35,618 nucleotides of DNA, from the NCBI GenBank assembly GCA_002269645.1, contig NIVC01004764.1:1-35618 (forward strand). The letters run 5' to 3'. A model generated the notes under the pieces. The model was not told the origin of the DNA. It worked only from the letters and a program-made list of their open reading frames with translations, and did no database searches. Shown one piece after another: positions 2-33,599 of this stretch. Each line of letters begins with the position of its first letter. Position 1 is the first letter of the stretch. The translations under genes and the position numbers were made by a program. The stretch is from Macrostomum lignano (Eukaryota).

Positions 2-802
2 TTGCTATGCGACTTTGTCAAGGTTAGCAACAGCTCGGAGGCGGCTCTGTACGCCGATCAGGACATCCAGAGCTCCATGGAGGCGCATTGAGACCATCGA
101 CTTTTCACAGGAGCTGGAGGTGAACGGCATCAAATTCACGGCCTATCACGCTGGTCACGTGCTCGGCGCCGCAATGTTTCTAATTGAGATAGCCGGAGTT
201 CGAATCCTGTACACGGGCGATTTCAGCCGGCAGGAGGACCGGCACCTGATGTCCGCCGAGCTGCCGCCCTGCCGACCAGACGTGCTCATCACCGAGTCCA
301 CCTACGGCACGCACATTCACGATAGGCGCGAGGAACGCGAAGCCCGATTCGTTGGTTTAGTGCACGATATTGTTGCTAGGGGCGGTCGGTGCCTGATACC
401 GGCGTTCGCCCTGGGCCGAGCCCAGGAGCTCATGCTCATCCTAGACGAATACTGGAGCCTGCACCCCGAGCTGCACCGCATCCCAATCTATTACGCGTCC
501 CAGCTGGCTAAGAAATGCATGGCAGTCTATCAGACTTATATTCACGCTATGAACGAATCTGTGCGCAATAAAATTGTCAATAACAATCCATTCGTGTTCA
601 AGCACATCAGCAACTTGCGCAATGTGGACATCTATGTTGACAGCGGGCCGTGCGTTATCATGGCCTCGCCTGGCATGATGCAGAACGGCCTGTCTCGCGA
701 ACTATTCGAGAACTGGTGCACAGACAAGCGCAATGGCGTCATCATTGCCGGTACTGCGTTGAAGGCACCCTAGCCAAGCAGATTCTCAGCCATCCGCAGG
801 AG
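2..802 (+). CDS. CPSF3: CPSF73 endonuclease, internal exon (metallo-beta-lactamase and beta-CASP region). 5' part lies outside the window. Two 1-nt frameshifts at about 83 and about 751.
   Basis: Frame from base 2 reads [17 protein letters not shown]. The frame from 84 reads [72 protein letters not shown]. The frame from 752 reads [17 protein letters not shown]. All match CPSF73 as I recall it. Donor GAG|GTGGCA at 803. Confidence 0.95.
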
Positions 803-844
803 GTGGCAACGTTCTCCCAACTATTTCATAGAAACTGACCAGCT

Positions 845-1515
845 ACTGAACAGAATTCCCCCACATTCCCCGCCGAGCTATTGAACAGATTTCTCCCATA
901 TTCCCCAGAGATATTGAGCATAATTTCCCCACATTCCCCACAGAGATACTTAACAGAATTCTCCCACATTCCCCACAGAGATATTAAACAGAATTCTCCC
1001 ACATTCCCCACAGAGATATTAAACAGAATTCTCCCACATTCCCACAGAGATATTGGATAGCACTCCCCCACATTCCCACAGAGACACTGGACGGAATTCC
1101 AACACATTCCCCACAGAGGTATTGGACGGAATCTCCCCACATTCCCCACAGAGGTATTGAACGGAATTCCCCCACATTCCCCACAGAGGTATTGGACGGA
1201 ATCCCCCACATTCCCACAGAGATATTGGATAGCACTCCCCACATTCCCCACAGAGACACTGGACGGAATCCCCCCACATTCCCCACAGAGGTATTGGACG
1301 GAATCTCCCCCCATTCCCCACAGAGGTATTAAACGGAATTCCCCCACATTCCCCACAGAGGTATTGGACGGAATCCCCCCACATTCCCCACAGAGGTATT
1401 GGACGGAATCTCCCCCCATTCCCCACAGAGGTATTGAACGGAATTCCCCCACATTCCTAACAGAGGTATTGAACGGAATTCCCCACATTCCTCACAGAGG
1501 TATTGAACGGAATTT
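845..1515. repeat. Minisatellite, 34-36 bp unit (ATTCCCCACAGAGGTATTGGACGGAATCCCCCCAC), filling CPSF3 intron 803-1604
   Basis: Tandem copies, e.g. at 1106, 1141 and 1176. Confidence 0.95.
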
Positions 1516-1604
1516 CTTCGTATCACAAGATGTTGAACGGAATGGCCTCCACATTTACTAGCTAGCTAATTCCACACTGATCTAACCAATCAACCAACCC
1601 ACAG

Positions 1605-2186
1605 GTGACCACAATGTCCGGCCAGACGCTGCCGCTAAAGTGCTCAGTAGACTACGTATCTTTCTCGGCTCACACGGACTACCAGCAGACGTCTGAGTTT
1701 ATTCGCGACCTGCGTCCGGCGCACATCGTGCTGGTGCACGGCGAGCAGAACGAGATGCTGCGGCTTCGCTCCGCCCTGCTGCGCCAGTACGAGGACGAGC
1801 CCGACTACCGCCTGGACATTTTCACGCCCAAGAACTGCGAATCCGTCTCGTTGCATTTCCGCGGCGAGAAAACTGCCAAAGTGGTTGGCAGTTTGGCTAA
1901 ATCAGCCCCTACTGAGGGCCAGCCTCTGTCCGGCATCTTAATGAAGAAGAATTTCAGCTATCATCTGGTGCACGAGACTGATTTGCCTACGTATACGGAC
2001 CTGGCTACTAGCGAGGTTACTCAGCGAATGGCTGTGCATTTCAGCATGCCGCCTAGCCTATTGTACTTTCATCTGGCTGTGGTGGCCGGCTCAGTTGAAA
2101 CTGTCAGGCAGAAGGGTGATTGTCACGTCTACCGCGTGTTCCAGTGCGTCACCGTTACCTGGGAGCCGCGCCAGGTTCTAATTGAG
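1605..2186 (+). CDS. CPSF3: CPSF73 internal exon
   Basis: Acceptor CCACAG at 1604. Reads VTTMSGQTLPLKCSVDYVSFSAHTDYQQTSEF..LVHGEQNEM..FRGEKTAKV. Donor GAG|GTGAGT at 2187. Confidence 0.95.
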
Positions 2187-2237
2187 GTGAGTTAATATTG
2201 GCTTATTAATTGTCTGAATGCTTTGTGTTTTTGTGGT

Positions 2238-2765
2238 GTTGCTATGCTGTTAAGATGCTTCCTTACTTTGTTGCTATGCTGTTAAGATGCTTCCTTACTT
2301 TGTTGCTATGCTGTTGGGATGCTTCCTTACTTTGTTGCTATGCTGTTAAGATGCTTCCTTACTTTGTTGCTATGCTGTTAAGATGCTTCCTTACTTTGTT
2401 GCTATGCTGTTGGGATGCTTCCTTACTTTGTTGCTATGCTGTTGGGATGCTTCCTTACTTTGTTGCTATGCTGTTAAGATGCTTCCTTACTTTGTTGCTA
2501 TGCTGTTAAGATGCTTCCTTACTTTGTTGCTATGCTGTTAAGATGCTTCCTTACTTTGTTGCTATGCTGTTGGGATGCTTCCTTACTTTGTTGCTATGCT
2601 GTTGGGATGCTTCCTTACTTTGTTGCTATGCTGTTGGGATGCTTCCTTACTTTGTTGCTATGCTGTTAAGATTCTTCCTTACTTTGTTGCTATGCTGTTA
2701 AGATGCTTCCTTACTTTGTTGCTATGCTGTTGGGATGCTTCCGTACTTTGTTGCTATGCTGTTGC
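2238..2765. repeat. Minisatellite, 32 bp unit (GTTGCTATGCTGTTAAGATGCTTCCTTACTTT), in CPSF3 intron 2187-2911
   Basis: About 16 near-identical copies; TAA/TGG variants. Confidence 0.97.
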
Positions 2766-2911
2766 GCTGTTGCTATGCTCTCAAAATTCGTTTCTATACT
2801 GATTGATAAAAAGACGGTCTCCGTTGCTATGGGTTGGAAAACGGCAATTATTATACTATACACTGATAACGCCCCTACCCCAGCTAAGCACTCCACTCTG
2901 CCCATCTCCAG

Positions 2912-3295
2912 TGGCAGTCCAACCCGGTCAGCGACATGTTCGCCGACGCCGTGCAGACGGTGATCCTGAAGGCCGAGCTGGAGGGCATGCCCTGGCAGAG
3001 CGTGCCAGCCCCGGCCAGGCAAGACAGCACCGCGTTTCGCACCGCCCTGTTGGAAACTCTGTCCGAGATGTTCGGCCCGGACAGCGTGCAGGGCCGGCCG
3101 GATCCCAGGAAGAGCGGCCTGACCTTTCAGCTGGTGGTGCGCAACCGTCAGGTTGAGGTGGACACCGGACGGCTGACGGCCACCTGCGAAGAGGACGCCC
3201 CGCTGCAGCAGCTGGTGCGCACCGTCATTAATAGACTGCGCCAGGTGCTCCTGCCGCCGCTGCGTCAGCTGGAAGAGGCTCAGGCAGCATCCTGA
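2912..3295 (+). CDS. CPSF3: CPSF73 last exon (C-terminal CPSF73-100_C region)
   Basis: Acceptor CTCCAG at 2911, phase 0. WQSNPVSDMFADAVQTVIL matches WLANPSNDMYADTVTTVIL of the human protein (recalled). Stop TGA at 3293-3295. Confidence 0.92.
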   Translation, partial: WQSNPVSDMFADAVQTVILKAELEGMPWQSVPAPARQDSTAFRTALLETLSEMFGPDSVQGRPDPRKSGLTFQLVVRNRQVEVDTGRLTATCEEDAPLQQLVRTVINRLRQVLLPPLRQLEEAQAAS

Positions 3296-4502: not shown

Positions 4503-4949
4503 TACTGGACAAACGGCTATACCAACAACCTCGGAGTAGGCATCTATCACTCAGGCGTACAGGTGTACAATCGAGAGTACACCTACGGCGGGCACCCGTC
4601 GGAAACCTCCGGCATATTCACCATCGCGCCGCAGAACGCCGAAGAGCTTGGCGAGAATTTCAAATTGAAAACCAGCATACCGCTGGGCTGCACCCACCTG
4701 TCGCAGGAGGAAATCGACGAGGTCATGGTTAATCTCGGGCAGAAATTCACCGGCAAGGATTATCACCTGACTAGACAGAATTGCAATCACTTCTCCAATA
4801 ACATGCTGGCTATTATCTGCAATTCCTCGCTGCCCAAGTGGGTTAACAGGTTGGCCACGGTCAGCACTACTGTGCCATTCATTGAACGGGCCATTCCCAA
4901 GGAGTGGCTGCGACCGCAGGACGGCTCCGAGCTCGATGACGAGTTCTAG
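4503..4949 (+). CDS. DESI2: PPPDE-family deSUMOylase/deubiquitinase, exon 2. Spliced protein is 186 aa.
   Basis: Acceptor TCGCAG at 4502. Reads YWTNGYTNNLGVGIYHSGVQVYNREYTYGGHP (catalytic His) and YHLTRQNCNHFS (catalytic Cys), then PKWVNRLA..PKEWL. Stop TAG. Confidence 0.93.
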   Translation, partial: YWTNGYTNNLGVGIYHSGVQVYNREYTYGGHPSETSGIFTIAPQNAEELGENFKLKTSIPLGCTHLSQEEIDEVMVNLGQKFTGKDYHLTRQNCNHFSNNMLAIICNSSLPKWVNRLATVSTTVPFIERAIPKEWLRPQDGSELDDEF

Positions 4950-5059
4950 CGACTGACATAGCGACTTGGAGGGGGGCACCGCGTGGTTCTGTGTTTTGCT
5001 TTTCTTGCTGCGGTTAATGTGGAGTTGGCAACAGTTGCTTCACTTGCTGTCATAGCATT

Positions 5060-8389: not shown

Positions 8390-8932
8390 ATGTCGTCGCA
8401 ATCGACTCAGCAGTTGCTAAGCAACGGCAGCGACGCGGTAACCCAACAGCAGACAGACGTTGGCACGCTGATCGTGGGTCGCAACGGCCGGCTGCAATGG
8501 CCAGATGAAACTGAGCAGGATGAAGATTCGCACCGATGTTTCCCCAAATTCTGGCAGCTGTGCTCCCTGCTAGCCCTGTGCCTGTTGAGTTTCACGTCGG
8601 CAGCTCTGGTGTACAAGACTGCGTGGCTGAGCCAGCACGGCAAGGCCTGTGTATTGCTGGGCTACTTCGGTGGCCACTCCGCCGCCAGCCTGGCCGCTGT
8701 TGCCATCGATCGCTGCTTGAAATTCGCCGCTCAGCCTCGGCGACGTTCTTCCTATCGAGTTGGCGACGCCTCGCTGCATCTGCTGTCATTTTTTGGCGGC
8801 GCGATTGGCACTTTGATTGGCATGCTGCTGTGCTGTCACCGGGTTAAACGGCTGACCTTCATTGTCATTACGCTTCTTCTGGTGCCATGCAATGCCTTCT
8901 GGCTGCTACTGGCTCTGCTTGTCCTCACGTGA
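8390..8932 (+). CDS. DUF1294/YsdA-like multi-pass membrane protein, apparently intronless
   Basis: GC-rich 180-aa non-repetitive ORF with several hydrophobic helices. AIDR..YRVGDASLHLLSFFGGAIGTLIGMLLCCHRVKRLTF resembles the DUF1294 pattern DK..WRIxExxLHLLxLLGGxxGAxxxxxxxRHKxxKxxF, matched by eye. Confidence 0.7.
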   Translation: MSSQSTQQLLSNGSDAVTQQQTDVGTLIVGRNGRLQWPDETEQDEDSHRCFPKFWQLCSLLALCLLSFTSAALVYKTAWLSQHGKACVLLGYFGGHSAASLAAVAIDRCLKFAAQPRRRSSYRVGDASLHLLSFFGGAIGTLIGMLLCCHRVKRLTFIVITLLLVPCNAFWLLLALLVLT

Positions 8933-9885: not shown

Positions 9886-10549
9886 AAAGGGAGGGTTTAG
9901 CTCTAATAGAAATGTTTTATACGAGCTTGCGACTCGGACTGTAAGTACATTAAGTACGTTTTGTACATTAGCATTAAACAGCTTCGATGACATTCCAGTG
10001 CACTGTTTCTTGACTGAAATGTATTATTCAAATTGTGACTACTTGAAGATTTGTACACAATTTTATTTTCAGTAGCGTAATATATAGTATTCATAGATTT
10101 TATTCTAGAATTCTCATTTAAATATATGTTTGTTTTTGTGTGTATGATTCTGTCTACTAGTAGTCTGTTTGGCGTATCTTTTTTCTTTCTATCTATGCTT
10201 TTGCCGAGTGAAAAATGATTTTCGATTGTTGGCTCTAATTGCTTTCTATTCATTTTCTAATGAAATATAAATACCTACCAGCTCATTTACGTGGTTTCCA
10301 CACCTTATAGTGGGGGTATCAAGTTGTGTGCCTCATTGACTAGCAAAACAATGAATTGTTTGATCTGTATTTATTTTGCTTGGTGAATAAAATATTTTTA
10401 CTACGTTTAGTCTATTATTATAGATGTATTTTACTCAGAACGTTTTAAATAAGATAAGTGCAAGGTTTGTCAAGGAATCTGGCCATTGGTTAGTTTATTT
10501 ATCATTCAAGGGATTCCCTTGATTAGGCAATTGAGCAGTTAACTAGTAT

Positions 10550-20999: not shown

Positions 21000-21040
21000 T
21001 TACACCTGGCACATCTCTTGCAGGCTGGGCTCCTCTGCCA

Positions 21041-21096
<56 letters not shown>

Positions 21097-21352
21097 CCAG
21101 TTTGTCTTGGCTGCGCGCTCTGCCGCCTGCCTGCGCCATGCTGCTGCTGATGCTGCTGCTGATGCTGCCTTTCGGCCAGCTCCTTGAATAGGATCAGCGC
21201 GTCCTTTCGACCGGCCTTCTGTAAGCAGCGACCAAACAGGCCGATGGTGGCGCCGGGACGCTGCGACCAGGTGCGCAGCATCAGCCGGATGGGGCTCTGG
21301 CGAAGGGCGTCGGCTTGGGCCTCGAACTCCTGCACCTCATCGGCTGAGAAGC
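21000..21352 (-). CDS. NGFR: p75NTR-like receptor: death-domain exon with polyQ tail
   Basis: Acceptor TTTCGCAG at 21353, phase 1. FSADEVQEFE..SPIRLMLRTWSQRPGATIGLFGRCLQKAGRKDALILF fits death-domain helices 2-6. Stop TAA at 21000-21002. Confidence 0.88.
21042..21095 (-). repeat. Coding (CAG)18, polyglutamine
   Basis: 18 CTG on +, in frame in the death-domain exon. Confidence 0.93.
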
Positions 21353-21575
21353 CTGCGAAAAAAAATTTTTTTGGTTTTCAGAAATATTTTACTACTTATA
21401 GCCGACTCTACTGATAGTAGCAAGCTGGTAGTTTTCTTTCGGTATAACGGTTTTTATTTTGGTAAGCCATTGTGTCCATTCACAAATCTTTTTCAGTAAT
21501 CTGCTTCTATCCTTCCAGATCCTTTCAGTAATCCGGTTCTACAGTACCCTCCCAGATGAAGGATCCCAGTCTCAC

Positions 21576-21974
21576 CCAGTTCCGTTGCCAGCTCCTTCCA
21601 AGCGGCCGGGTCAGGGTTGTTGCTCAGGATATTCTCCAAGCGCTGGAACCGGGAGTCCGAGATCTCCTTCAACGGCCGGGTGCTGCTGCTGACCGAAGCG
21701 GCCAGAGCTTCGCTGCCGCCGAATCCGCTATCGACGCTGCGTCGTTTTAGCAGCGCCGCAGGCTGGCAGCTGCGCGGCGGCGGGTACATCGGGCTCTGCG
21801 GCGGGATGAGCGCGTTGCTGGCAGGCAGATGCTGCTGGGTCTTGCGGCTGTACGTTCTGCTCCGGAAGTATTTGAACACGATCCAGACGATCAGGCTGAC
21901 GATAATGGCGCCCAGCACGGCGCAGTACACTGGGATCATGTCGTTGCGGCTGCCGGAGTGCCGGCTGACTGGCT
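21576..21974 (-). CDS. NGFR: p75NTR-like receptor: transmembrane, juxtamembrane and start of death domain
   Basis: Acceptor TTTTCCAG at 21975. DMIPVYCAVLGAIIVSLIVWIVFKYF aligns without gaps to human NLIPVYCSILAAVVVGLVAYIAFKRW (recalled). Also SVDSGFG and ..AAWKELATELG. Donor G|GTGAGA at 21575. Confidence 0.9.
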
Positions 21975-22114
21975 CTGGAAAAGTGGCAAAAGAAGAAAAC
22001 TTGCATATTTCAGTATATTTCAGTCAGTATAACTGCTTTTAGTGCCGGGAATGAAAGGCAATGGGAAATTTGCCTATAGATGGCATACATATGGCACTTG
22101 TAGTGTCACTATCA

Positions 22115-22460
22115 GTGGCACAAAATGGCACCGGGAATGACAATATCGGTGGCACAAAATGGCACCGGGAATAGCAATAAGTGGCACAAAATGGCACCGG
22201 GAATGGCAATATCAGCGGCACAAAATGGCACCGGGAATGGCAATATCGGTGGCACAAAATGGCACCGGGAATGGCAATATCGGTGGCACAAAATGGCAAT
22301 GGCAATTTTAATGGCAATTTTAATGGCAATATCAGTGGCGCAAAATGGCACCGGGAATGGCAATATCGGTGGCGCAAAATGGCAACAGGACTGACACATC
22401 GGTGGCGCGAAATGGCACCAGGATTGACACTATCGGGTGTCACAATATGGCATAGGGAAT
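22115..22460. repeat. Minisatellite, 34 bp unit (GGCACAAAATGGCACCGGGAATGGCAATATCGGT)
   Basis: Copies at 22117, 22151 and onward; intronic. Confidence 0.93.
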
Positions 22461-22959
22461 GGCAACATCGGCGGCATGCATAAAAATGACATTTTAATTG
22501 GCCCTAAACGAATGAAATTTAACCTGGCTCTGGCGTTAGGAATAACACAAAAAATGACACTAGTAAATCTTCATTTTACTACTCAGTTTAGTCTGTTTAG
22601 TAGAGTAGTATGTGTCTGACAGTTCCTTTTGTATTCCAAAAGAACAAGAGATCAAGTGGGGCTTTCAAATGTATGTTTACATGTTACAAAAAGTGTTATC
22701 AGTTAAAGATTTTATTGCGCAGCTGAAGTGGTGTGTGAGAAAAACAGAAAGCGAAGTCGTTAGTCAAGTGTTAGTCAAGGGCGCCTTTGAGCACTTTGAT
22801 ATTCTAATTTTGTCTATTGATGTCTGCTCGATTTTTATGAATTAATTGTACAATTTTAACTGAAAAACTTACTGCAATGTACCTGCAAATGCTGTTGAAG
22901 TTAAATTTTGGCATGATTAAATTAAGAAAACGCCGACTTGCAGAATCCAATTTTTTCAA

Positions 22960-23565
22960 TTCCAATTTTGGTGTCCCAATTTTAAAATCCCAATTTTAGA
23001 ATATCAACTTTCGGATCCCAATTTTAGAATCCCAATTTTAGAATCCCAATTGTAGAATCCCAATTGTAGAATCCCAATTTTAGAATCCCAATTGTAGAAT
23101 CCTAAGTTTAGAATCCCAATTGTAGAATCCCAATTGTAGAATCCTAAGTTTAGAATCCCAATTTTAGAATCCCAATTGTAGAATCCTAAGTTTAGAATCC
23201 CAATTGTAGAATCCCAATTTTAGAATCCCAATTGTAGAATCCTAAGTTTAGAATCCCAATTGTAGAATCCCAATTTTAGGATCGTAAGTTTAGAATCCTA
23301 ACTTTAGAATCCCAATTTTAGAATATCAACTTTCGGATCCCAATTTTAGAATCCCAATTTTAGAATCCAAAGTTTAGAATCCCAATTTTAGAATCCCAAT
23401 TGTAGAATCCTAAGTTTAGAATCCCAATTGTAGAATCCCAATTTTAGAATCCCAATTGTAGAATCCCAATTTTAGAATCCCAATTGTAGAATCCTAAGTT
23501 TAGAATCCCAATTGTAGAATCCCAATTGTAGAATCCTAATTGTAGAATCCCAATTTTGAATCCCA
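22960..23565. repeat. Minisatellite, 14 bp unit (GAATCCCAATT[G/T]TA)
   Basis: About 40 copies; intronic. Confidence 0.97.
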
Positions 23566-24035
23566 AATCTCAAATTGCGATTTCAAATGCAGCTTCAATA
23601 GCAGGAACTGCAATCAGCATCTCGGAGCGGAGGCCGGATACTCGCACTCAGTCAGTTTGCAAATCGCGCACAACTTTATCAGCTGCGCGGCTCTGATAGG
23701 CAGATGCGCGCACTACAAGAGAGCCATAAATTCTATCAGGTCGTCCGGCTCCCGTGTGGGGGGGGAGCTGCAGACGCGGAGGCACGAGAGACAATCGCAA
23801 GCCTCCCCTTTTATAAGCGCTCTGACTTTCTTTTTACGACTCTCCGGTCGGACGCAGTCTGCGCGCCTTCGCTATGAAGGCCAAAGCGAAAAGAGGGCCC
23901 CGCGTCTCTGCGCTGTATCTGCCCTCTCTGTGCGCAGTTTTATTGTCGGCCTTCCAGCTGCGGCCTTGTGAATTGTGGAGAGAATGCAGTGAGATAGGGA
24001 CTGAGGGCTGGGCCTTTCATGGCACCGCTGCTGCG

Positions 24036-24071
<36 letters not shown>

Positions 24072-24072
24072 C

Positions 24073-24131
<59 letters not shown>

Positions 24132-24132
24132 C

Positions 24133-24163
<31 letters not shown>

Positions 24164-24164
24164 C

Positions 24165-24211
<47 letters not shown>

Positions 24212-24212
24212 C

Positions 24213-24243
<31 letters not shown>

Positions 24244-24244
24244 C

Positions 24245-24299
<55 letters not shown>

Positions 24300-24300
24300 C

Positions 24301-24343
<43 letters not shown>

Positions 24344-24344
24344 C

Positions 24345-24383
<39 letters not shown>

Positions 24384-24384
24384 C

Positions 24385-24423
<39 letters not shown>

Positions 24424-24424
24424 C

Positions 24425-24463
<39 letters not shown>

Positions 24464-24496
24464 CACAGACAGACAGACAGACAGACAGACACACAC

Positions 24497-24567
<71 letters not shown>

Positions 24568-24586
24568 CACAGACAGACACACAGAT

Positions 24587-24619
<33 letters not shown>

Positions 24620-24665
24620 CACAGACAGACACACAGACAGACACAGACAGACAGACAGACAGACA
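24036..24665. repeat. (GACA)n microsatellite with CACA interruptions
   Basis: Direct reading. Confidence 0.98.
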
Positions 24666-25294
24666 AATAGACACATTACTGATGGCACCGAAACAAACTG
24701 TCTTCAGGGAAAGTGAGAAGTTGAGGACATGGAGCGGAGATTCAGGGTGAGAGACTTAGAGGGAGCTGAGCACAAGCCCCATCTCTGAGGTCTGAAACGA
24801 GCAGCGAATTCCAATCTCGCCTCTGCCAAGTGCCAGTGTGCCAGCAACGCAATTCCAAATTGGCTGAGCCTGGGCGAATCCCCGAGCATCGCCGTCCAGT
24901 TTGAATGATGACGGGGGGAGTCTGCGTGGGAAGCGAGTTCCGCACGCATTCAGCGATGCCGCGCGTACGAAGAAGGTCGTTTATCTTCGAAGCCAGCCGC
25001 GGAAGCGATCGGGAGTCTGGAAATGCCGCCGCCGGTGCCTCGCTGGGGTGGAGGGCGACGGCGAAATCGGATTAGTCTCAAATCCGGCCACCTCCGAGCT
25101 GAGGAACGCAAATCGAATATTTTGGCCGGCAGCCAAAAATCTTGCTGCTGCTGCTGCTGCTGGCGCGGATCGGAGTCCAGGATTGTTGCGGAATCGGGGA
25201 AGCTGATGACATCGTCGGCTGGCCTATGCGGCTCGGTCACATATTTGAGCTCGAGAGTTCAGGACTGTCGCAACCATCTCAATTGCCATATTTC

Positions 25295-26095
25295 CCCCCA
25301 CTTCCCCTCTCTCCCCTCTCACTTGCCCTCTCTCCCCTCTCACTTGCCCTCTCTCCCCTCTCACTTCCCCTCTCTCCCCTCTCTCCCCCCACTTCCCCTC
25401 TCTCCCCTCTCACTTCCCCTCTCTCCCCTCTCACTCCCCCTTTCTCCCCTCTCACTTCCCCTCTCTCCACTCTCACTTGCCCTCTCTCCCCTCTCTCCCC
25501 CCACTTCCCCTCTCTCCCCTCTCACTTCCCCTCTCTCCCCTCTCTCCCCCCACTTCCCCTCTCTCCCCTCTCTCCCCCACTTCCCCTCTCTCCCCTCTCA
25601 CTTCCCCTTTCTCCCCTCTCACTTCCCCTCTCTCCACTCTCACTTGCCCTCTCTCCCCTCTCTCCTCCCCCACTTCCCCTCTCTCCCCTCTCACTTGCCC
25701 TCTCTCCCCTCTCACTTCCCCTCTCTCCCCTCTCTCCCCCACTTCCCCTCTCTCCCTCTCACTTCCCCTCTCTCCCCTCTCACTTCCCTTTTCTCCCCTC
25801 TCACTTGCCCTCTCTCCCCTCTCACTTGTCCTCTCTCTCATCTCACTTGCCCTCTCTCCCCTCTCACTTGCCCTCTCTCCCCTCTCGCTTTCCCTCTCTC
25901 CCCTCTCGCTTTCCCTCTCTCCCCTCTCGCTACCCCTCTCTCCCCTCTCGCTTCCCCTATCTCCCCTCTCGCTTTCCCTCTCTCCCCTCTCGCTTTCCCT
26001 CTCTCCCCTCTCGCTACCCCTCTCTCCCCTCTCGCTTCCCCTATCTCCCCTCTCGCTTTCCCTCTCTCCCCTCTCGCTACCCCTCTCTCCCTCGC
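25295..26095. repeat. Polypyrimidine minisatellite, 21 bp unit (TCACTTCCCCTCTCTCCCCTC)
   Basis: Variant gradient from TCACTT on the left to TCGCTT/TCGCTA on the right. Confidence 0.95.
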
Positions 26096-26769
26096 CCCCA
26101 CTCCAAAGAGCACCCAGCACAGCACCACCCAGCAGCATGATCGCTAGTTGTCCAAGGATTTGCATCTCCCAGCAGCAGCAGCTGCCTCAACCGCAGAAAA
26201 ATTCCCATATCCTTAACCGGGCTTTCCGCGTAAGATACGGGCCGCTTGGGATATAAAGCTGTAAAGCAAGAAAGTTTTATGGGTTTTTTTGGTGCTATAT
26301 ACGCGCGCGGCGGCGTATTATATGGTGTTGTCAAAGCCGCAACTGCCCCAAGAACAAGACTGCATGCCCGGTTTTATTGCACCAGCTTATACGAGAGCTC
26401 GCAGTCAGTTTTTTCAGACCGCCCGCCCCGCCGTTCCGAAGTTGTAAAAAATCTCTTCTCGCTAACGATCAAAGGAAAACTAGCGACACTATTGACTGGG
26501 TGAGGGCGGGGGCGCTATAATTTTTTGGGGGGAGTTTCTCGCTATAAAACTTTGGGTCTGGCATTGTGCTTATGCCTTTTTAAAACCATTTTTACTGGCC
26601 CAAAGCCACTCAAAACCTGAGGTAGATCATTTTATTACTAAAGTGTGCGTATCTCCGTGTTTATACTTTGTGTTTCAGAGTTTTTACTTGGAATGAATTG
26701 ATAAAAATATCTCATTCGCATTGATAAGTCTATCCGCTCCATGAACTGGTGGTCTCAATATCCTTAATG

Positions 26770-27165
26770 ATTGGACTGGCGGCCTCAAAATCCGTGATGA
26801 ATTTGACTGCATGGTGGCCTCAGAAACCGCCATCCTGGCGGCCTCAAAGACAGTCATGGATGGACTGGCGGCCTCAAAGACAGTTATCGATGGACTAGCG
26901 GCCTCAGAAACCACCATGAACGGACTAGCGGCCTCAGAAACCACCAGGAATGGACTGGCGGCCTCAGAAACCACCATGAATGGACTGGCGGCCTCAGAAA
27001 CCACCATGAATGGGCTGGCGGCCTCAGAAACCACCATGAATGGGCTGGCGGCCTCAGAAACCACCATGAATGGACTGGCGGCCTCAGAAACCACCATGAA
27101 TGGGCTGGCGGCCTCAGAAACCACCATGAATGGACTGGCGGCCTCAGAAACCACCATGAATGAAC
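26770..27165. repeat. Minisatellite, 30 bp unit (ATGGACTGGCGGCCTCAGAAACCACCATGA)
   Basis: About 9 homogeneous copies plus degenerate left copies. Confidence 0.95.
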
Positions 27166-27497
27166 GGCCCGAAACCGCCCGGGATGAATCACTGGAAAGT
27201 TTGCTAAAGCAGAAAATGCGCAAAAAGAATCGAGCTAAAAATGGGATAATCTAAAAAAACCAGCCGGAAAACTTTTCTCCCAAGCACGGAGGGGATTTTC
27301 CTCCTTCTGTTGCGACAAGATTCGGCGCTATAGAAGACCCAGATAGTGGACTGACAGCGGCGCAGTTCCCCCCTTATCCCTTTCCCCGTGTTTGCGTCCT
27401 TTGCATACGGCGGAACTCCACACTACAGCAGAATCGACCGAGTGTTATTTAGAATGAAGCGCATAATTTTCTGTCGGTTCCGGTTTCCAGACAAGTA

Positions 27498-27500
<3 letters not shown>

Positions 27501-27568
<68 letters not shown>
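27501..27568. repeat. (CT)n microsatellite
   Basis: Direct reading. Confidence 0.99.
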
Positions 27569-27571
<3 letters not shown>

Positions 27572-27924
27572 TTAATTAGAACGCAACTGGAGGGGGCGCG
27601 CAGCCGCTTTAAAATAAAGTGGGAAATGCGGAGTTTCCACGAAAACGCAGTTCGGCTTTGCACCCCCCCCCCCTAGGTTTCGCGATATAATAAACTAACA
27701 ATGCCGGGGGTATATCGTCTTCTTCTTGCGGTTCGGCTTGGACTGTGCGAATAAAATATAAAATTCTATTTTTTAAGGTGTGACTTATAATGATTTTCTA
27801 GCAGCACAGAGTTTATGCATAGTATTCGATTACTAACTAAGGACTGATGGCGATTTTTGGGGAAACTGAAGAAGGTAATCCTGAAGCCGCAATATCCGCT
27901 TAATATCCACTGACCAAAGTGCGA

Positions 27925-28850
27925 ATCTGAGGACAGTGCCCCCTGAGAACAGTATCCCATGAGGACAGTGACCCCTGAGAACAGTATCCCATGAGGACAG
28001 TGCCCCCTGAGAACAGTATCCCATGAGGACAGTGCCCCATGAGGACAGTATCCCATGAGGACAGTATCCCATGAGGACAGTGCCCCATGAGGACAGTATC
28101 CCATGAGGACAGTATCCCATGAGGACAGTATCCCATGAGGACAGTGCCCCATGAGGACAGTATCCCATGAGGACAGTATCCCATGAGGACAGTATCCCAT
28201 GAGGACAGTGCCCCCTGAGAACAGTATCCCATGAGGACAGTGACCCCTGAGAACAGTATCCCATGAGGACAGTGCCCCCTGAGAACAGTATCCCATGAGG
28301 ACAGTGCCCCATGAGGACAGTATCCCATGAGGACAGTATCCCATGAGGACAGTATCCCATGAGGACAGTGCCCCATGAGAACAGTATCCCATGAGGACAG
28401 TATCCCATGAGGACAGTGCCCCCTGAGGACAGTGCCCCATGAGGACAGTGCCCCATGAGGACAGTATCCCATGAGGACAGTGCCCCATGAGGACAGTATC
28501 CCATGAGGACAGTATCCCATGAGGACAGTATCCCATGAGGACAGTATCCCATGAGGACAGTATCCCATGAGGACAGTATCCCATGAGGACAGTATCCCAT
28601 GAGGACAGTATCCCATGAGGACAGTGCCCCATGAGGACAGTATCCCATGAGGACAGTATCCCATGAGGACAGTATCCCATGAGGACAGTATCCCATGAGG
28701 ACAGTATCCCATGAGGACAGTAGCCCATGAGGACAGTATCCCATGAGGACAGTATCCCATGAGGACAGTAACCCATGAGGACAGTATCCCATGAGGACAG
28801 TAACCCATGAGGACAGTAGCCCATGAGGACAGTATCCCATGAGGACAGTA
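27925..28850. repeat. Minisatellite, 16 bp unit (CATGAGGACAGTATCC)
   Basis: About 57 copies; starts about 75 nt inside the intron after the stalk-exon donor. Confidence 0.98.
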
Positions 28851-28924
28851 AGAACACAAAATCATTGAGAAATTGGCAAAGTCACAGAAGAGGCAAGAGC
28901 CACAAACACCAGTCGCTCCCTCAC

Positions 28925-29218
28925 CTTCAGTCCGGGCCACCTGGGTGAGGTTGAAGCGAGCCAAGTTAATGGGTGGCCTAGGGTTGCCATTGTCGATGAG
29001 CTCTTTCCAGTCGGACAGCGGCCTGCTCTGCGGCTGCTTTTGCTGCTTGCGAAGAAATGAACCTTCTTCAGCCGGCTGCTGCTGCTGCTGTTGCAGGTCC
29101 CGAAATACAGAGTCAGCAGTGACGGCACCCGGCGACAGCTCTGTGGCATCTGGAGAAGTGGTCGGCGCCATGCTTAGCAGCCTGGATCCAAACGGCAACA
29201 GGCTTTTTCCCACCCTGG
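28925..29218 (-). CDS. NGFR: p75NTR-like receptor: Ser/Thr/Pro/Gln-rich stalk exon (acceptor uncertain: 29218 or 29246)
   Basis: GC-rich open frame SMAPTTSPDATELSPGAVTADSVF..FNLTQVARTE. Phase-1 donor G|GTGAGG at 28924 matches the phase-1 acceptor of the TM exon. Confidence 0.6.
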
Positions 29219-29832
29219 CTACACTCCCAATGTTCGAATGAATTCGCTGCAGCTAGTCTGCGTTCAAAGCCGAGCTGCGCCGGTTTTTTTAACGCCGAAA
29301 AGAAGGTAATTTTGAATTCGAACTTATAAAAGGCGGCCCCCAGCGCAGTGCAGTTGCTTTTGGATGAAACCGAGCCAGCCAATGAGCTGGGGCCGGTGCA
29401 AAAACGGCTGAACGGGCTGGAAATCTCTTCTCTTCATAGATAGCTTCCTGCTATCTACGATTTATCTGGTTTAACGATGTCCTTAGCATGCTACTGACTT
29501 CAGTAGTGTGAGAAGAATAGAATTTTGCTTATTTATCGATCTGGATGTATTTCTGCTTTAAACGTATCAATCTCTAAGAAACTAAGTAGTAGTCTAAGTA
29601 GTGACTATGCCAGGCGTTTTGCATTTAGATTTATTTTTCAAAAAAAATTCAATCCTTTTTTCCTCCCCTGTTGAGGGCTACGATTACTTGCTACGATAGT
29701 TTACTAAGGGAGGCTCTCTTTCTATCCCCCATCAGCCAATCAAAAAGCTCAGATAGCTTACTATGTAGCGAGGAGGCTCTCTTTCTACCCCCAACAGTCC
29801 CATCAGCCAATCAAAAAGCTCCGATAGCTTAC

Positions 29833-30379
29833 TAGCGAGGAGACCGCTGGCTTCAGAGCGGCAGACAGGTCCGGATGGTCGCTGGCAGGTTTCGGGCAGT
29901 AGCTGGTAACCGGGTGGACAGGCGGTAGCGCAGAGCCGGCAGATTCTGTTACGCAGGCCGGCTAGGGGCGCCGAGAAGCTCCCAGCTGGGCAGGGCGCGC
30001 AGTCGGCCACCCGAGTGCCGTTGCAGCTCGCTGGGTCCGCGAGGCCCTGGCCAATCGGGCAGCTGGCGCAAGGCGCGCAGTCACCGCCGCGCAACCGGTA
30101 ATAGCCGTCGGCGCATGGGCAGATGGTGTCCCGCTCGGCGGTGCACTCGGACACCAGCCTCTCGGACGGCCGGTTGCACGGTCGGCATTTTTCGCAGTTG
30201 TACAGCGCGCTAACTGCGGCGCTGAATGTGCGCATCTGACCGGAGCTGCACGGAACGCATTCGGTGTCGTGGAATTTGCCCGTAGCCTCATCCCTGTAGC
30301 ACTTGGTGATCATGCCGTAGCCTTTGGAACACGGCCTGCAGCACAGCGAGCCAACGCTCTCCGTTCCTGGCCGACATTT
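29833..30379 (-). CDS. NGFR: p75NTR/TNFRSF-like receptor: exon encoding four cysteine-rich domains
   Basis: Acceptor TTTAACCCACAG|AAA at 30380. 24 Cys in TNFR spacing (LCCRPC..TECVPC..TFS..CEKCRPC..ECTAERDTICPCADGYY..CAPCASC..DCAPCPAGSFS..CRLC..C..C). Donor A|GTAAGC at 29832; an alternative donor follows 29762. Confidence 0.88.
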
Positions 30380-31026
30380 CTGTGGGTTAAACCAGTTTTG
30401 ATACGTGAAAGTCTCTCCCTCGCTGGTTTCATGTAGCTCACGCATTTGATTGGCTGCTGAGGGTAGAAAGTAGCATCTAGCCTCTAATAAGGGGGAAGAG
30501 GGGTAGGGTGGTGTCTGGCCTCTGATTGGCTGCTGGGTGAGGGGTAGGGTAGTGTCCGGCCTCTGCTTGGCTGCGGGAATAAAATACTACTTAATAATCT
30601 CTACGTTAATGATAGTACTTTTTAGCTGCCTGTTTAAACTTTTCTCGTGCAAAAATCGTAGCAACAGATTCTTACAGTAGAAAGACAAGGATATGATATG
30701 ATTTTTATCAAACAAAGATACGCGCATTAGACAAAGAACGAGCTGATTCGATTTTAATGACTGAACTCATTGAAAATCTAGGAATTTTTATTTAAAAGTT
30801 TTGAGTGAATCTGATGCTAGGTACTAACCTACATGCTCAGATATAATCAGATATCTGTGTTGAGGGACCCGATTGTCTATGTACGGCACTTCGTAGGCCC
30901 CCACGTTTGATGTGGGCACAGATTAATGAAACTTGGAGAGGGAGCAGCCCGCCCCTATTTCACTACCGCATACATGTAGGTGCAATGTGTGCGGTTCGGA
31001 TATATTGCTTGAATAAAACCGTTTAC

Positions 31027-31180
31027 TGCCCTGCTACAGACAGACCAACGTGCGCTGGCACATTTTACAGCAGCGGCAGCAGCAAACAACAACAGAGGGG
31101 CAGAGGCAATACTGACTTGCTGTATCAACTTTAGACACACCCAGGGTCAGGGGAATCCGGGCCCCCGCCGCCGCTGCCAT
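31027..31180 (-). CDS. NGFR: Candidate signal-peptide exon of the p75NTR-like receptor (needs one 1-nt frameshift near 31141)
   Basis: ATG at 31180 gives MAAAAGARIPLTL. The adjacent frame gives VCLKLIQQVSIASAPLLLFAAAAAVKCASARWSVCSRA, then phase-0 donor GCA|GTAAAC, which fits the phase-0 acceptor of the CRD exon. Confidence 0.45.
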
Positions 31181-31334
31181 CGTAAACTTTTTTATGACGA
31201 CCTCGGCCACCCCCCCCTAACTATATGGCAGCGCCTGGCTGCATGGCTGGCTCAAAAAGTTGCCCTAAAACACTTCTTACTGACTATAATATGCTCAGCC
31301 GTATTAATTAGTGGTAGTGCCTTAGTGTGTTGGC

Positions 31335-32920
31335 AGAATGGCACTGAGACATGCAGAATGGCACTGAGACATGCAGAATGGCACTGAGACATGCAGAATG
31401 GCACTGAGACATACAGAATGGCACTGAGACATTCAAAATGGCACTGAGACATGCAGAATGGCACTGAGACATGCAGAATGGCACTGAGACATGCAGAATG
31501 GCACTGAGATATGCAGAATGGCACTGCAGAATTCAGAAGGGCACTGAGACATGCAGAATGGCACTGAGACATGCAGAATGGCACTGAGACATACAGAAGG
31601 GCACTGAGACATGCAGAATGGCACTGAGACATGCAGAATGGCACTGAGACATACAGAATGGCACTGAGACATTCAAAATGGCACTGAGACATGCAGAATG
31701 GCACTGAGACATGCAGAATGGCACTGAGACATGCAGAATGGCACTGAGATATGCAGAATGGCACTGCAGAATTCAGAAGGGCACTGAGACATGCAGAATG
31801 GCACTGAGACATGCAGAATGGCACTGAGACATACAGAAGGGCACTGAGACATTCAGAATGGCACTGAGACATGCAGAATGGCACTGAGACATGCAGAATG
31901 GCACTGAGATATGCAGAATGGCACTGAGACATACAGAAGGGCACTGAGACATTCAGAATGGCACTGAGACATGCAGAATGGCATTGAGACATACAGAAGG
32001 GCACTGAGACATTCAAAATGGCACTGAGACATGCAGAATGGCACTGAGACATGCAGAATGGCACTGAGACATTCAGAATGGCACTGAGACATGCAGAATG
32101 GCACTGCAGAATTCAGAAGGGCACTGAGACATTCAGAATGGCACTGAGACATGCAGAATGGCACTGAGACATGCAGAATGGCACTGCAGATTTCAGAAGG
32201 GCACTGAGACATACAGAAGGGCACTGAGACATGCAGAATGGCACTGAGACATGCAGAATGGCACTGAGACATGCAGAATGGCACTGAGACATACAGAATG
32301 GCACTGAGACATTCAAAATGGCACTGAGACATGCAGAATGGCACTGAGACATTCAGAATGGCACTGAGACATGCAGAATGGCACTAAGACATGCAGAATG
32401 GCACTGAGACATACAGATGAGTTCTGAGACATTCAGAATTGCAATGAGAAATGCAGAATGGCACTAAAACATTCAGAATGGCACTAAGACATTCAGAATG
32501 GCACTGAGACATTCAGATGGGTACTGAGACATTCAGTATGGCAATGAGACATTTAGAATGGCACTGAGACATTTAGAATGGCACTGAGACATGCAGAATG
32601 GCACTAAAACATTCAGAATGGCACTAAGACATTCAGAATGGCACTGAGACATTCAGATGGGTACTGAGACATTCAGTATGGCACTGAGACATGCAGAATG
32701 GCACTGAGACATTTAGAATGGCACTGAGACATGCAGAATGGCACTAAAACATTCAGAATGGCACTGAGACATGCAGAATGGCACTGCAGATTTCAGAATG
32801 GCACTGAGACATGCAGAAGGGCACTGAGACATGCAGAATGGCACTGAGACATGCAGAATGGCACTGAGACATGCAGAATGGCACTGAGATATGCAGAATG
32901 GCACTGCAGAATTCAGAAGG
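31335..32920. repeat. Minisatellite, 20 bp unit (GCAGAATGGCACTGAGACAT), with a 240 bp higher-order repeat
   Basis: About 79 copies; rows 31381-31560 equal rows 31621-31800. Confidence 0.98.
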
Positions 32921-33599
32921 GCAACAAGTCGCCCGGGCTGACACAGATGTCTCAACACCTTCCCAGATCTTACCTGCGCCTGTCCATCGGCAGGCTTCAC
33001 CAGTGCAGCTCTAACTCTTGGCATTATTAATAATTGTCTCTAAATCCGACTAACTCTTAGCTTGCTTGTGGCTATCAAATCTAAGGTGAGAAGCTATGAG
33101 AATGCCCGCTGATTCGCCCTGCTAGAGAGTCTGAGGGTTTATATAACACTAAGTCCTGTAATTGCTCCAAACAAAAGCCGCCGGGTCGCCGCGGTCGGGC
33201 CAATGGTGAGCGGCCATTAATTCGCCTTTACAATTTTTAATTGCAGGTAGGGGGAGGGGTGGAAAGTGTGCGGGGCGGCCCAAGAATGGCATCAAACGCG
33301 GCCGCGTGGATTTCTGACCCGCCGTTTTGCTCCGCAGACTGGCAGTGAAAGCAGGCGCAGCTCCCACTGCCAATACGGCCAGACCGCTCTGGGCCATAAA
33401 CCAAAAAAGTGGGGCAGAGAAGAGTCGACCGAAAGGCGCGCAGCCAAGGACACCCAGTACGAGAACCTGGAGTGACAACTGTAGGGCTCTCTTGGTAGTT
33501 TTCACACAATTTACGCGGCATATTTCTTATTATATTAAGATATCATAAATTCCGCTTGTTTTTGTAAATTTGGTCTCAATTCAGACCCGAATATATACA

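Follow-up and report, generated by a model that had tools for sequence, protein, structure and literature searches.

The 35,618-nucleotide (nt) stretch of DNA analysed here, referred to as the window, is scaffold scaf4765 of the Macrostomum lignano assembly GCA_002269645.1. Its minus strand carries, between positions 21000 and 33024, a gene of ~12.0 kb whose five exons encode a single-pass receptor of 524 amino acids (aa). Very probably, the region is one genomic copy of the described M. lignano tumor necrosis factor (TNF) receptor gene BOX15_Mlig018038g1, its product is a member of the p75NTR/TNFRSF16 family, and the most likely ligands are TNF-superfamily proteins.

The curated gene model joins the minus-strand exons 33024–32974, 30379–29833, 29149–28925, 21974–21576, and 21352–21000 into 1,575 nt of coding sequence, with every junction GT–AG and in phase. 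Exon 1 (32974–33024; MPRVRAALVKPADGQAQ), which matches coordinates published for scaf4765 in Table S1 of PMC7519573, ends at a phase-0 GTAAGA donor and is not hydrophobic; a possible TATA box (TATATAAA; 33138–33145, minus strand), recognized from its sequence only, lies 114–121 nt upstream of the exon-1 ATG. Exon 2 (29833–30379) is an open reading frame (ORF) matched by Pfam TNFR_c6 and encodes four TNF receptor (TNFR) cysteine-rich domains (CRDs) with 24 Cys, followed by a phase-1 donor 11 residues past the last of them. The extracellular stalk is contributed by exon 3 (28925–29149) and contains a DWKELIDNGN motif that is common to the CRD-less paralogues discussed below; the acceptor of this exon, ttctccag/AT, yields ..SGLLA/NATELSPG.. 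as in the UniProt entry A0A1I8HNW7 (P0001) and the published protein. Exon 4 (21576–21974) encodes the juxtamembrane segment, the transmembrane (TM) helix (MIPVYCAVLGAIIVSLIVWIVFK; 21871–21939, recognized by PF18422 and by matches in the PDB), an intracellular linker carrying the motif RRSVDSGFGGSE, and the beginning of the death domain, up to a phase-1 donor (..WKELATEL/G). The remaining death domain (to ~21189) is encoded by exon 5 (21000–21352) along with a His/Gln-rich tail that includes (CAG)18—a tandem array at 21041–21095 detected with Tandem Repeats Finder (TRF)—and the C-terminus ..EMCQV before the TAA stop.

A preliminary description of this DNA, read from the raw letters, had assembled a similar gene from five minus-strand exons with compatible phases and had placed it at 21000–31180, across ~10 kb of satellites. 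The number, strand, and phasing of the exons hold, as do the satellite-filled introns, but the gene extends to 33024, and both the first exon (32974–33024) and two of the acceptors (30379 and 29149) differ from those proposed. The earlier splice model (exon 1 at 31180–31141; acceptors at 30456 and 29218) is in frame and gives 569 aa when reconstructed, rather than the ~580 aa announced; it lacks a signal peptide and departs from the curated published structure, in which its exon 1 and the upstream extensions of its exons 2 and 3 are intronic. Without the intronic part of that third exon, the stalk—described as rich in Ser, Thr, and Pro—is not markedly so.

The gene is not new to the literature. 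Bertevello et al. 2020 (Parasit Vectors 13:491; PMC7519573) list both the M. lignano gene and its scaf4765 copy, for which their Table S1 gives exons at 29831–30385, 21574–21975, 21171–21353, 28926–29075, 29094–29195, and 32974–33024; since these coordinates match the exons of the window, the window is that scaffold. Their survey, which searched by TNFR domain and reported a single receptor type, tabulates matches to the gene on 15 scaffolds, names NGFR as the best human match of the M. lignano TNFR (4.8e-20), terms the platyhelminth TNFRs ‘remarkably similar to NGFR’, and counts M. lignano among seven species with a conserved death domain (PMC7519573). Database entries tell the same story. 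In our homology search, A0A1I8HNW7 proved identical to the window exons except at the stalk-exon acceptor, and PAA89918.1 (BOX15_Mlig018038g1) falls into the same 90% cluster, with the UniProt name “Tumor necrosis factor receptor superfamily member 16”. This search, which was word-indexed, returned four matches, all of them M. lignano proteins; one reason may be that polyglutamine (polyQ) and polyalanine words of the query took up much of the list of candidates.

Compared with BOX15_Mlig018038g1 (PAA89918.1 / A0A267GV70), the window gene has the same exon structure in a collinear locus, and its product shares 98% aa identity with the published 513-aa protein, the two differing at nine substituted residues and in the length of two polyQ tracts. 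The window thus holds a second copy, either a homeologue or an allele. The host had been guessed to be a flatworm, rightly so, and the domain architecture of the preliminary description was likewise correct, whereas no support was obtained for the first exon it proposed, for the signal peptide, or for the protein length. Its premise of novelty has to be given up: gene, NGFR-likeness, and death domain are published and annotated in GenBank and UniProt, the latter naming the protein TNFRSF16, and the listing of both gene and scaffold copy in PMC7519573 is just the kind of prior description that the preliminary description had itself said would remove the novelty.

Domain searches against Pfam and the PDB were run on the 569-aa five-exon coding sequence rebuilt from the preliminary splice sites. 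Three Pfam families scored above their curated cut-offs: TNFR_c6 (E=8e-8), in the exon with exactly the 24 Cys that had been counted for its four CRDs; TNFR_16_TM (PF18422; 29.8 bits, cut-off 25.6); and Death (E=1e-12; 48.4 bits), which spans the last two exons. The best single PDB match was NRADD (6hj7), which aligned in both TM helix and death domain, accompanied by TM peptides of p75NTR (2mic, 5zgg, and 2mjo) and by the ectodomains of p75, TNFR1, and CD40. Together, the three Pfam domains and the PDB matches place the described domain content far beyond chance. Read directly, the TM helix has the p75-type Cys and, in the register of human A262xxxG266, A(+5)xxxS(+9), as the preliminary description had noted when it called the helix p75/NRADD-like; AxxxS can be read as a small-xxx-small variant of AxxxG. 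In an alignment, the death domain displays W-K-E-L-A-T-E-L-G-F and, downstream of it, the LL..W..ATxxxL...GR.D pattern common to p75 orthologues.

Membership in the p75NTR/TNFRSF16 family is supported by the best global matches, an ectodomain profile, the TM domain, and a shared death-domain intron. A HMMER search of 1.84 billion representatives, run without filters, yielded 154 matches, the best of which from outside Macrostomum cover both the ectodomain and the part from the TM helix to the death domain. Among these best matches, the nine that we looked up were all named TNFRSF16, NGFR, or p75, and include proteins from Patella, Mytilus, Crassostrea, Pinctada, Tubulanus, Saccoglossus (‘p75 neurotrophin receptor-like’), and Anneissia, as well as a representative (P0013) with cluster members named in Limulus and Tachypleus. 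Lower ranks were taken by p75 and NRH-type proteins of vertebrates, TNFRSF16 of nematodes, TNFRs of other flatworms, ‘TNFRSF16-like’ proteins of cnidarians, and a fish TNFR1A, and none of EDAR, TROY, or XEDAR appeared among the ~30 matches whose names were retrieved.

The ectodomain profile, built from an alignment of four flatworm ectodomains in which all 24 Cys line up, retrieved the p75NTR structures 3ij2, 3buk, and 1sg1 first (100–96 bits; aligned over positions 16–169), ahead of CD40 (84 bits), OPG (68), DR6 (63), and TNFR1 (49). EDAR, TROY, and XEDAR were absent from its 55 PDB matches. This agrees with the earlier view of the protein as p75NTR-like rather than Fas- or TNFR1-like: p75 ectodomains reach 100 bits versus 49 for TNFR1, the named top matches point to p75, and the TM helix is p75-type, not the non-p75 helix of the TNFR1/Fas type. 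Nor is the receptor of the NRADD/NRH2 type, which is devoid of CRDs, as four CRDs are present.

The gene structure adds a further character. A phase-1 intron splits the death domain (..A-x-E-L/G) at the same codon in the window gene (21576/21352), the Patella p75-like gene (L003, 34913/36519), the Opisthorchis TNFR gene (L006, 76299/77363), and an M. lignano paralogue (L001, 18802/20250). Probably shared by Tubulanus as well, this intron may be a spiralian-wide gene-structure marker of the family. Another phase-1 intron follows CRD4 in all compared genes, ~10 codons further downstream in M. lignano (11 residues past the last Cys) than in Saccoglossus, Patella, and a vertebrate p75 (one residue).

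p75NTR is a dimer held together by its TM cysteine, and ligand on the CRDs rearranges the death domains, allowing adaptors to bind. By family analogy, the M. lignano receptor would bind a secreted or shed ligand through its four CRDs, would form a disulfide-linked dimer held by the TM Cys, and would respond to ligand binding with a rearrangement of its two death domains that recruits cytoplasmic adaptors. FADD has not been found in flatworms—it is reported as absent from platyhelminths (PMC11463336)—and for this reason signaling would more likely proceed via TRAF/JNK-type adaptors than via a FADD–caspase-8 complex.

As for the ligands, the worm’s own TNF-superfamily proteins would be the most likely candidates. 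M. lignano possesses several endogenous TNF-ligand homologues (PMC7519573), and no flatworm neurotrophin or Trk was found in the literature searched, the genome itself not having been searched for either; a ligand of the TNF type is therefore the more economical assumption. In the parasitic relatives, EmTNFR has been cloned and comprises a signal peptide, four TNFR domains, a TM segment, and a death domain; human TNF-α stimulated metacestode formation in Echinococcus cultures expressing this orthologue, and experimental work has addressed both SmTNFR and EmTNFR as receptors of host TNF-α (PMC10850878).

We deem it improbable, by comparison, that the protein is a true neurotrophin receptor, the CRDs of which would bind a hypothetical flatworm neurotrophin, possibly with Trk or sortilin acting as co-receptor, as is the case in vertebrates, Aplysia, or Platynereis. 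The idea draws on the closeness of the flatworm ectodomain profile to the neurotrophin-binding ectodomain of p75NTR, on the p75 hallmarks in the TM and death domains, and on the coexistence of neurotrophin, Trk, and p75 in other spiralians (Wilson 2009; Lauri 2016). However, apart from the lack of a flatworm neurotrophin or Trk in the searched literature, the several TNF-family ligands of M. lignano need a receptor, and the parasite orthologues respond to TNF-α.

The assignment to the p75NTR/TNFRSF16 family has to be weighed against a number of observations that speak against it. In neighbor-joining (NJ) trees with 200 bootstraps—all of our trees were made by distance methods—the flatworm clade received 15% and the bilaterian p75 clade, set against cnidarian, TNFR1A, and amphioxus outgroups, 13% bootstrap support, and support was low in the published Bayesian tree, too (PMC7519573). 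Saccoglossus p75 and a vertebrate p75 lack the death-domain intron, which therefore supports orthology within Spiralia only. No signal peptide was seen by hydropathy among the candidate first exons, which makes the 5′ end, and hence the topology, provisional, and the published table has none for the M. lignano gene, either (PMC7519573). Finally, the gene identifier Mlig018038 was not found in the main text of papers in the searchable literature.

A first BLOSUM-distance tree did place the protein with the flatworm TNFRs inside the p75 group, but the M. lignano branch was unstable across the distance trees of the full-length protein and of the death domain, where only the cluster of M. lignano paralogues was moderately supported (54–75%). 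Such a long branch without firm placement, combined with the low posterior probability in the published tree (PMC7519573), would also suit a lineage-specific flatworm TNFR that merely resembles p75NTR, be it through ancestral TNFR features or convergence, without being its orthologue. Two further points lead in the same direction: taken alone, the death domain resembles p75 no more than it does MyD88 or TNFR1 in PDB searches, and TROY has a p75-like TM helix as well (Wilson 2009). We nevertheless rate mere resemblance as unlikely, and slightly more so than a neurotrophin receptor. The named top matches are all TNFRSF16 or p75, in the extracellular and the intracellular half alike; PF18422 scores above its cut-off; p75 ectodomains rank first by 16 bits; the mollusc p75-like gene has an intron at the same position and phase; and the DSG linker motif and hydrophobic C-terminal end are common to invertebrate p75s. 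The shared death-domain intron and the ectodomain profile add support for p75NTR orthology beyond that of the published tree.

Turning to the missing signal peptide, the best 9-residue Kyte–Doolittle mean is 0.91 for the curated exon 1 and 1.19 for the first exon of the preliminary description, as compared to 2.96 and 3.42 in two orthologues; the signal peptide tentatively proposed there is therefore not borne out by either exon. Given that the first exon of orthologues, at the same phase-0 position, is short and clearly hydrophobic, the absence is probably a problem of 5′-end annotation and not a real family difference or loss. A search for an upstream signal-peptide exon was uninformative, as it produced 2,237 in-frame hydrophobic combinations that cannot be told apart by sequence alone. 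One ATG-initiated stretch (MAQSGLAVLAVGAAPAFTASL.., at ~33398–33320 on the minus strand) resembles a signal peptide. It precedes the TATA-like box as well as, by ~370 nt, the curated start codon, and could be due to chance or be part of an alternative 5′ exon.

A second copy of the locus, on scaf131 (L007), is collinear with the window over its whole length, including every satellite array, at 92–98% identity. Exons and unique intron sequence are equally conserved between the two (~97–100%), hence this comparison cannot pick the right first exon. Across 331 ungapped codons, eight synonymous and six non-synonymous differences separate the copies, and the resulting ratio of non-synonymous to synonymous rates (dN/dS) of ~0.24 indicates purifying selection between them and is consistent with both being functional. 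The only coding indels are in-frame changes in polyQ length, with 18 Q in the window versus 6 in scaf131 for the C-terminal tract (21041–21095) and 6 versus 7 for the stalk tract (~29075–29094); variants unique to the window copy include S34, T139, and R160. That the window copy should be a decaying duplicate, i.e. a pseudogene among the ~15 scaffold copies of a polyploid, repeat-rich genome, is very unlikely: scaffold matches are numerous in the published table (15; PMC7519573), older gene models of related copies (P0002 and P0004) are frame-shifted, and the introns are swollen with satellites, yet all five exons are open, the splice sites are canonical, and both the dN/dS ratio and the restriction of coding indels to in-frame polyQ changes argue against decay.

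Tandem repeats account for ~5.4 kb of the 12.0-kb gene, and ~45% of its introns is minisatellite as judged by TRF. Intron 1 harbors a satellite with a 20-bp unit in ~80 copies (31333–32923), found at the same place in the scaf131 copy. The 6.95-kb intron 3 (21975–28924), collinear with its scaf131 counterpart, contains seven tandem arrays with units of 16 bp (27928–28850), TC (27501–27568), 30 bp (26745–27162), 21 bp (25299–26091), GACA (160 copies; 24036–24673), 14 bp (22942–23566), and 34 bp (22110–22475). All arrays of the receptor locus are kept in position between the two copies. Over the entire window, TRF detected 28 distinct mini- and microsatellite arrays—about one per 1.2 kb—that occupy ~16 of the 35.6 kb (~45%), have units of 2–59 bp, are mostly 0.3–1.6 kb long, and sit in introns and between genes.

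The plus strand of the window carries further genes. The 3′ part of a CPSF73-type pre-mRNA 3′-end endonuclease gene (15–3295) comprises at least three exons, encodes Beta-Casp, RMMBL, and CPSF73-100_C domains, and runs off the window start. It is followed by an exon with a PPPDE/DeSI-type peptidase C97 domain (4563–4949; E=1e-30) and an ORF (8390–8932) encoding a DUF1294 membrane domain (E=1e-7), the latter two being neighboring genes unrelated to the receptor.

Besides the receptor, M. lignano has two more p75-like gene types that combine the TM domain (PF18422) with a death domain and are without CRDs: Mlig025712 (P0003; L001 10001–21406, NIVC01000667.1) and Mlig015487 (P0014; L008 10001–14887, NIVC01002132.1). 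Neither features in the 2020 survey (PMC7519573), and within 10 kb upstream of them we found no Cys-rich ORF or tblastn match at either locus. Both retain the stalk motif (DWK[EV]LIDNG) and the death-domain intron. Since their death domains cluster with that of the window gene (54–75% bootstrap) and not with vertebrate NRADD/NRH, they look like lineage-specific NRADD-like derivatives. At the Mlig015487 locus, a POU-homeobox gene ends ~2 kb upstream of the paralogue. The first coding exon of Mlig025712 (..ASWKELIDNGN..) occurs twice in L001, at 4886–5017 and 10001–10132, 5.1 kb apart, suggestive of either a tandem duplication at this locus or an artefact of the assembly.

From these data we derive a tentative proposal, one we would sooner doubt than endorse: the flatworm receptor may be a genuine p75NTR orthologue that uses endogenous TNF-superfamily ligands instead of neurotrophins, and the CRD-less, NRADD-like partners that Macrostomum would have gained by lineage-specific duplication (Mlig025712 and Mlig015487) may modulate it via the shared TM Cys and death domain. 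If this were true, the neurotrophin specificity of p75 would either have been lost in flatworms or be derived from a TNF-binding ancestor, and ectodomain-less ‘p75 helpers’ would have arisen independently in flatworms and vertebrates. As a discovery, the locus matters little, the gene being present in GenBank, in UniProt, and in a paper dedicated to platyhelminth TNF signaling; what the exercise does demonstrate is that the correct multi-exon domain architecture can be assembled from raw sequence across 10 kb of satellites, as the preliminary description did.

Among known systems, the M. lignano receptor shares with p75NTR/NGFR/TNFRSF16—as found in vertebrates, Saccoglossus, Patella/Lottia, Mytilus, Platynereis, Capitella, and Daphnia—four CRDs with 24 Cys, a PF18422 TM helix (IP[VLI]YC) with a small-xxx-small motif, the DSG linker motif, the death-domain motif W-x-x-L-A-x-E-L-G-[FY], a hydrophobic C-terminal residue, and a phase-1 intron not far after CRD4; with the Patella p75-like gene it additionally has the death-domain intron in common. 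Unlike p75NTR, it has no recognizable signal peptide, AxxxS in place of AxxxG, a longer stalk encoded by a separate exon, a polyQ tail, and no known neurotrophin partner. NRADD/NRH2 resembles it in the TM helix and death domain (6hj7), but NRADD has no CRDs where the M. lignano gene has four. The receptors of parasitic flatworms, SmTNFR of Schistosoma mansoni and EmTNFR of Echinococcus multilocularis, offer a close parallel, with four CRDs, one TM helix, and an intracellular death domain or death-domain-like region; their ectodomains are 29–35% identical to that of M. lignano, with all 24 Cys aligned, and the Opisthorchis TNFR gene carries the death-domain intron at the same place. The M. lignano death domain is, however, much better conserved (Pfam E=1e-12) than those of SmTNFR and EmTNFR, and whereas the latter have been studied as sensors of host TNF-α in parasites without endogenous TNF ligands, M. 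lignano is a free-living, regenerating worm with TNF homologues of its own.

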